A program made the translations under genes and the position numbers. 64,000 nucleotides of DNA, from NCBI GenBank assembly GCA_002269645.1, contig NIVC01000269.1:124001-188000 (forward strand), in the 5' to 3' direction. Below are positions 38,654-57,040 of this stretch, piece after piece (within the stretch, counting starts at the first letter, position 1; every line of letters begins with the position of its first letter). Source of the DNA: Macrostomum lignano. Taxonomy: Eukaryota. A model generated the notes under the pieces. The model saw nothing but the letters and a program-made list of their open reading frames with translations, had not been told where the DNA came from and did no database searches.

Positions 38654-57040
<18,387 letters not shown>

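Follow-up and report, generated by a model that had tools for sequence, protein, structure and literature searches.

Flatworms are known to possess a selenocysteine (Sec) machinery and selenoproteomes (PMC3828610). The genome of the neopolyploid flatworm Macrostomum lignano comprises three subgenomes, S, L1 and L2, with an SNP divergence of 1.9-2.4% (PMC10733133). Its assembly Mlig_3_7 was produced from PacBio reads with Canu, after which Pilon was run with Illumina and RNA-seq data for polishing (PMC5730564). Here we examine a DSL-family gene in a stretch of 64,000 nucleotides of this assembly (contig NIVC01000269.1, positions 124,001 to 188,000 of the forward strand; referred to as the window, in whose coordinates all positions are given). 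An earlier note, made from the letters alone, had pointed out a TGA codon inside this gene and had offered selenocysteine, stop-codon readthrough, a recent null allele or a consensus error as explanations. We find that the in-frame TGA does not stand for selenocysteine but reflects either an assembly error or a young knockout of an ordinary kind.

Results

A seven-exon DSL gene with one internal stop

Rebuilding the gene with canonical GT..AG splice sites places it on the minus strand from 51809 to 49577, with seven exons, 421 sense codons plus the terminator, and a single internal stop. The features of the model are as follows:

51741..51809, minus strand: exon 1, with the start codon ATG at 51809-51807 and a hydrophobic, signal-peptide-like N-terminus that is the same in the paralogue L001
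51511..51635, minus strand: exon 2, in which the Delta-like N-terminal domain begins; contains CDPKF
51319..51436, minus strand: exon 3, whose acceptor attcacag/G yields TG/G (Trp)
51033..51223, minus strand: exon 4, which contains the premature stop
51176..51178, minus strand: premature stop TGA, codon 120; its middle base, 51177, is G on the coding strand and C on the plus strand
50825..50952, minus strand: exon 5, with the DSL domain (residues 177-208, 50927-50832)
50026..50365, minus strand: exon 6, with a Ser/Thr-rich linker and the transmembrane (TM) segment (residues 293-318, 50120-50043)
49577..49871, minus strand: exon 7, encoding the cytoplasmic tail; terminator TGA at 49579-49577

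The internal TGA (51178-51176), the 120th codon of the gene and the 16th of exon 4, lies four residues past Cys116, within the minus-strand codons AAG GAG TGC TTG TTC GAT TGA GAC AGA GAC GAA ATT. The rebuilt model thereby confirms the single in-frame TGA at the position reported earlier. It was likewise correct to describe the rest of this seven-exon DSL gene as intact; splice sites, frame, N-terminus, DSL cysteines, TM segment and tail are all present. Independent confirmation of the exon layout comes from the annotated paralogue proteins P0001 and P0013, both of exactly 421 aa and collinear with the model at every junction. The six introns are all of the GT..AG type and measure 74-459 nt.

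At the end of intron 2, two in-frame acceptor AGs occur 21 nt apart (51437-51457, minus strand). With the upstream AG (exon start 51457), a second stop, TG/A, would arise over the exon 2/3 junction, while the downstream AG (exon start 51436, Trp) is the sole acceptor compatible with the annotated paralogue proteins. A genome-wide reassignment of TGA to Trp, a candidate prompted by the TG/A at the upstream AG, was rejected: the downstream acceptor gives TG/G, and the DSL gene and its paralogues use TGA as terminator. Since the gene and its paralogues end on TGA, this codon is an ordinary stop in the M. lignano genome.

Relationship of the gene product to the DSL family

In P0001, residues 177-208 match the Pfam DSL family (PF01414) with 26.7 bits against a cutoff of 24.2 (E 7e-6), a partial match that spans only profile positions 1-35 of 46 and is marginal with respect to the Pfam cutoff. 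The window product is identical to P0001 over residues 177-208, and its C-terminal part scores 23.4 bits against the same profile, just below the cutoff of 24.2. Pfam MNNL gave no match in P0001 at E<=1. Using phmmer, residues 10-209 could be aligned to the N-terminus and DSL domain of P0006 (E 9e-7), a canonical protein with a DSL domain of 51.3 bits plus EGF repeats, and the N-terminal and DSL part of P0011 was aligned as well. No family match to EGF repeats was obtained in P0001, P0013, P0004 or the window product; after the DSL domain, a Ser/Thr-rich linker stands in their place. The topology is type I by inspection, with the hydrophobic N-terminus of exon 1 and a single TM segment followed by RRRRRRR (residues 293-325).

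An exhaustive HMMER scan of 1.84 billion representatives returned only 10 relatives, P0004 and P0006 among them, which indicates a small, fast-evolving family. P0004 is an older M. lignano paralogue of 404 aa that is 41% identical to the product of the DSL-like gene; its gene (locus L002, NIVC01001918.1:85895-96472) is nested in, or overlaps, the span of an oppositely oriented ion-channel gene with Ion_trans / PKD_channel domains. On these sequence features, the window gene is a divergent EGF-less Delta-like type I membrane protein, for which the DSL label is acceptable and a role as Notch ligand is putative.

The TGA replaces a leucine codon

The closest proteins to the window product are from M. 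lignano itself and show 93-95% identity. P0001 (BOX15_Mlig006308g1, 421 aa) is 95% identical over 100% of the query and is encoded at locus L001 on NIVC01000988.1. P0013 (BOX15_Mlig026505g1, 421 aa), taken from the 90%-identity cluster of P0001, is encoded at locus L003 on NIVC01002420.1, and P0002 and P0003 are fragmentary UniProt models among the close proteins. The DNA of L001 and L003, spanning 358935-373169 and 47925-70182 of their respective contigs, was taken from assembly GCA_002269645.1 (Mlig_3_7). A literature search with the locus names Mlig006308 and Mlig026505 returned no papers.

Residue 120 is Leu in all five close proteins (P0001, P0013, P0002, P0003 and P0014; KECLFDLDRDEI/DRDDI). 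At the DNA level, L001 and L003 both read GAT TTA GAC where the window reads GAT TGA GAC, and TGA differs from the Leu codon TTA by one base, T-to-G on the coding strand at 51177. The column lies between the family-invariant Asp119 and Asp123; distant relatives carry Arg (P0004), Lys (P0006) or Ser (P0011) in it, and neither Cys nor Sec occupies it in any homologue aligned, that is, in the close copies and these three relatives. TTA is the ancestral state, and the TGA, if real, is a derived substitution of a Leu codon. Set against intact paralogues of the same genome, the window copy as assembled carries a disabling lesion, L001 and L003 encoding full 421-aa proteins.

Selenocysteine

If the UGA were decoded as Sec, the product would be a selenoprotein resembling a Notch ligand. 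An in-frame TGA four residues after a Cys, in a frame that is otherwise open, is compatible with such a scenario, as is the lineage: with the Sec machinery known in flatworms, the obstacle is the lack of a gene-specific signal and not the machinery. The residues found at the column argue against it, the close copies all having Leu (TTA) and the distant relatives Arg, Lys or Ser, and the alternation between Cys and TGA that had been proposed as a mark of Sec is absent from the alignment. For the second expected signal, a SECIS element, the following region was scanned:

48300..49576, minus strand: downstream / 3' UTR region scanned for SECIS; none found

At the gathering threshold, Rfam cmscan of the whole window gave no match to SECIS or any other family, and at E<=10 over 48000-52500 no SECIS appeared either, the only match being a meaningless one to mir-598 (E = 2.4). 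A manual scan of the 1.3 kb past the terminator for SECIS core motifs, combined with folding, covered nine ATGA/GTGA sites, not one of which folds in a SECIS-like manner. Furthermore, the 3' UTR of the window gene is homologous to the 3' UTRs of the Leu-bearing paralogues, a further point against Sec, and no tRNA-Sec is present in the 64-kb window.

Both sequence-testable hallmarks of a selenoprotein gene, the Cys/Sec alignment and the SECIS, are missing from the window gene. The possible selenocysteine of the earlier note is refuted on the very grounds that it had named itself, with Leu in the close copies, Arg, Lys or Ser elsewhere and no SECIS, and we attach practically no weight to this explanation.

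Readthrough, editing and alternative splicing

Alternatively, the stop could be real but bypassed, through readthrough, through A-to-I editing of UGA to UGG or through a splice that skips it, so that a full-length or slightly shortened ligand would result. Exon 4 offers two splice routes of this kind. One uses a cryptic intron:

51146..51199, minus strand: cryptic in-frame GT...AG segment of 54 nt (gtcaag...ttccag), the splicing of which would remove the TGA and 17 other codons

The other uses an alternative in-frame acceptor, ttcttccag/CAA at 51146/51145, which could replace the acceptor of exon 4. That both alternatives are in frame and have canonical dinucleotides, and that the remainder of the ORF is intact, would suit a bypass. 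However, identical cryptic splice sites exist in the paralogues, whose annotated proteins keep the 18 residues; the skipped segment holds the family-invariant Asp119 and Asp123; and, at 54 nt, it is shorter than every one of the six introns of the gene, the smallest of which has 74 nt. The candidate explanation that the TGA sits inside a missed intron, be it the 54-nt segment or the stretch removed by the alternative acceptor, was rejected because the annotated paralogue proteins all keep these residues, two of them family-invariant.

With regard to readthrough and editing, RNA folding was examined. The 201 nt around the codon fold with z = +0.88 relative to shuffles and the 94 nt from the codon onward with z = -1.21, in neither case better than the shuffles, and with folding so unremarkable no editing duplex or readthrough stimulator is apparent. 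To our knowledge, UGA-GAC is not among the known leaky stop contexts. The proposal of stop-codon readthrough is unsupported, given the UGA-G context and the lack of a stable downstream structure.

Taken together, recoding or rescue of any kind is highly improbable. The same is true of a scenario in which the G-bearing copy is expressed and escapes the stop via the cryptic intron or alternative acceptor, editing or low-level readthrough. If such an escape did take place, one M. lignano subgenome would make a DSL ligand in which the acidic FD-x-D loop of the N-terminal domain is lacking or changed, and this would represent early sub- or neofunctionalisation of a homeolog and not loss.

The substitution is younger than the divergence of the copies

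Of about 2220 bases aligned over the gene, 53 differ between the window and L001. The resulting 2.4% is within the published SNP divergence of the subgenomes (1.9-2.4%; PMC10733133). The 14-kb L001 locus is collinear with the window over about 45000-57200 at roughly 89-96% identity, interrupted by differences in tandem-repeat length, and the collinear flanks at this identity identify the window and L001 as homeologous segments. A three-way alignment with L003 resolves the gene region into the following parts:

51101..52054, minus strand: tract of about 950 bp with the promoter-proximal region, exons 1-3 and the start of exon 4, identical to L001 bar the TGA/TTA base and one poly-T length
52109-51101: segment with 1 difference private to the window (the TGA base), 0 private to L001 and 29 private to L003
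50399-49377: segment with 38 differences private to the window, 6 private to L001 and 2 private to L003

In the tract of about 950 bp, the G at 51177 is the only substitution relative to L001, the poly-T length difference being located at 51233. Just outside the tract, at 52055-52057, the window has GTA as a 3-bp insertion relative to L001, and further window-private bases near the stop are C at 51100 and A at 51078 (coding strand). In the segment 50399-49377, L001 and L003 hardly differ.

The three copies form a mosaic over 49377-52109, with a switch zone at about 51100-50400. Such a pattern points to a recent exchange between subgenomes, by gene conversion or by recombination, or it may reflect a switch of haplotypes within the assembly, 36% of whose length is in subgenome-chimeric scaffolds (PMC10733133). 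Whatever the cause of the mosaic, the copies had diverged long before the TGA change arose.

No second lesion was found in the window copy, either as a frameshift or as a lost splice site, and the two exon 6 indels relative to L001, of 6 nt each, are in frame. The pN/pS of the window copy versus L001 is about 0.7, is below 1 on the window branch and is driven by the Ser/Thr-rich linker and the tail; it thus does not indicate a long period of neutral decay. Of all single-base changes in the CDS, about 3.9% would create a stop, so that, with tens of thousands of triplicated genes, a nonsense event of this kind is unremarkable.

Repeats and other features of the window

Micro- and minisatellite arrays are extremely dense in the window at 1-28000 and 37000-56600, with periods of 3-188 nt and up to 170 copies (examples are 1-724, 2293-2925, 6770-7449, 10605-11986, 15803-16849, 23070-24524, 42195-43083, 43861-44628, 54779-55184 and 55950-56532). 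This is consistent with a share of about 15% of simple and tandem repeats in the M. lignano genome (PMC5730564). Array lengths differ among the homeologous loci, and many long mechanical ORFs and odd Pfam matches (Gp5_C, MgtE_N) in the window are translated repeats. Between 20001 and 24000, a strong positive GC skew (+0.30 to +0.34) coincides with G-rich satellite arrays of 23-46 nt at 20186-24524.

On the minus strand at 31821-34592, an open frame of 923 aa with reverse transcriptase, RNase H and integrase derives from the pol of a Ty3/gypsy-type LTR retrotransposon and lies where the GC content of the window peaks (61%, 32001-34000). An ankyrin-repeat ORF on the plus strand at 38318-39169 has its best relatives, at about 53% identity, among M. 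lignano proteins with ankyrin and TRP_2 domains, and no identical protein is present in the database searched. This ORF is probably an exon of a TRP-channel-like gene.

Nonsense allele or consensus error

We favour a real, very young nonsense allele or incipient pseudogene that is tolerated through redundancy, with a probability of roughly 0.6. Among the four options of the earlier note, the recent null allele fits best, given the intact paralogues with Leu and the lack of any other lesion. As two intact copies (L001 and L003) remain, loss of the window copy can be tolerated.

The competing explanation is a consensus or assembly error, according to which the DNA of the animal reads TTA here too and the G at 51177 was miscalled and survived polishing. 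We regard this as the main rival, though the less likely explanation. A consensus error had been anticipated, albeit as one for TGC or TGG; this part does not hold, since the underlying codon is TTA (Leu). As the sole substitution in a tract of about 950 bp shared with L001, the G fits an isolated miscall and a mutation of very recent origin alike, and short reads of the window copy would map perfectly to the identical paralogue, leaving a miscall uncorrected. More generally, Pilon polishing of Mlig_3_7 took place amid 180 Mb of blocks that are at least 95% identical (PMC5730564), where multimapping can leave errors, and the share of subgenome-chimeric scaffolds mentioned above points in the same direction.

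Several observations speak against an error. Residual consensus errors of PacBio assemblies are mostly homopolymer indels, and substitutions such as T-to-G are untypical of them. Reads covering 51177 together with the window-specific C 77 bp away, at 51100, would have let Pilon correct the base. Moreover, the private C at 51100, A at 51078 and GTA at 52055-52057 mark the window as a distinct molecule and not a re-read L001.

The UniProt protein P0003, which comes from ML2, an older assembly made from the same DV1 line, bears on both explanations. It is of the window type in exons 6-7 (154/154 aa) and has Leu120 where the window has the stop, as an error would predict. However, it also has Asp146 where the window has His, which would require two miscalls within about 77-78 bp, or else P0003 represents another haplotype or a homogenised consensus. 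Its Leu would be equally expected if the window G is wrong or if ML2 captured a fourth haplotype or a consensus homogenised across copies.

Predicted consequence of the stop

If the nonsense allele is real, as we favour, a T-to-G change at 51177 would have turned TTA (Leu) into TGA in one of three subgenomic copies that diverged recently and are largely redundant. The TGA would act as a true premature stop, with translation ending after residue 119, inside the N-terminal Delta-like domain and upstream of both the DSL motif (residues 177-208) and the TM segment (293-318). The product would at best be a short secreted fragment devoid of the receptor-binding and membrane-anchoring parts. According to the exon junction complex (EJC) rule, a stop far upstream of the last exon junction renders an mRNA a substrate of nonsense-mediated decay (NMD). 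The premature stop occupies nt 358-360 of the mRNA and the last exon junction follows nt 971; at this distance of about 610 nt the mRNA should, by that rule, be an NMD target. The window copy would thus be expected to lose its function, and with two intact copies remaining no phenotype is expected. The TGA may mark a null allele that segregates or is specific to one line, and not a pseudogene that has become fixed.

Discussion

Our analysis removes a candidate "selenoprotein Notch ligand" and traces its stop to a single altered base in a Leu codon, private to one of three homeologous copies. If the change is real, it offers a datable case of duplicate-gene loss at its earliest step in a neopolyploid animal, a nonsense mutation inside a tract freshly homogenised with its paralogue, and gene sets as well as RNAi or CRISPR designs for M. 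lignano should count this locus as a pseudogene or null allele. Should it prove to be an error, it exemplifies a failure of polishing in near-identical homeologous tracts. In either case this is an ordinary finding that matters little outside annotation.

With DSL Notch ligands, the host gene shares a putative signal peptide, a putative Delta-like N-terminal domain that can be aligned to P0006, the DSL cysteine motif, one TM segment and a cytoplasmic tail, whereas it differs from them in having no EGF repeats, a partial DSL match and no Pfam MNNL match. Like eukaryotic selenoprotein genes, it displays an in-frame UGA in a conserved open frame and belongs to a lineage with Sec machinery; unlike them, it has no SECIS, its homologues carry Leu, Arg, Lys or Ser at the position and its sister copies are free of the UGA. 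The UGA also resembles cases of programmed readthrough or A-to-I recoding of UGA to UGG in that it interrupts a frame that is open and conserved downstream, but it is accompanied by neither a leaky context nor a stimulatory structure, and the paralogues have no stop.

The closest parallel is the nonsense pseudogenisation of duplicates after whole-genome duplication (fractionation). The change in the window differs from this process in its extreme youth, with no second lesion and a surrounding tract otherwise identical to the paralogue. It agrees with it in that a single substitution disables one copy while paralogues in the same genome are intact, and in that the copies, about 2.4% apart, match the published divergence of S, L1 and L2 and have collinear flanks (PMC10733133, PMC5730564).
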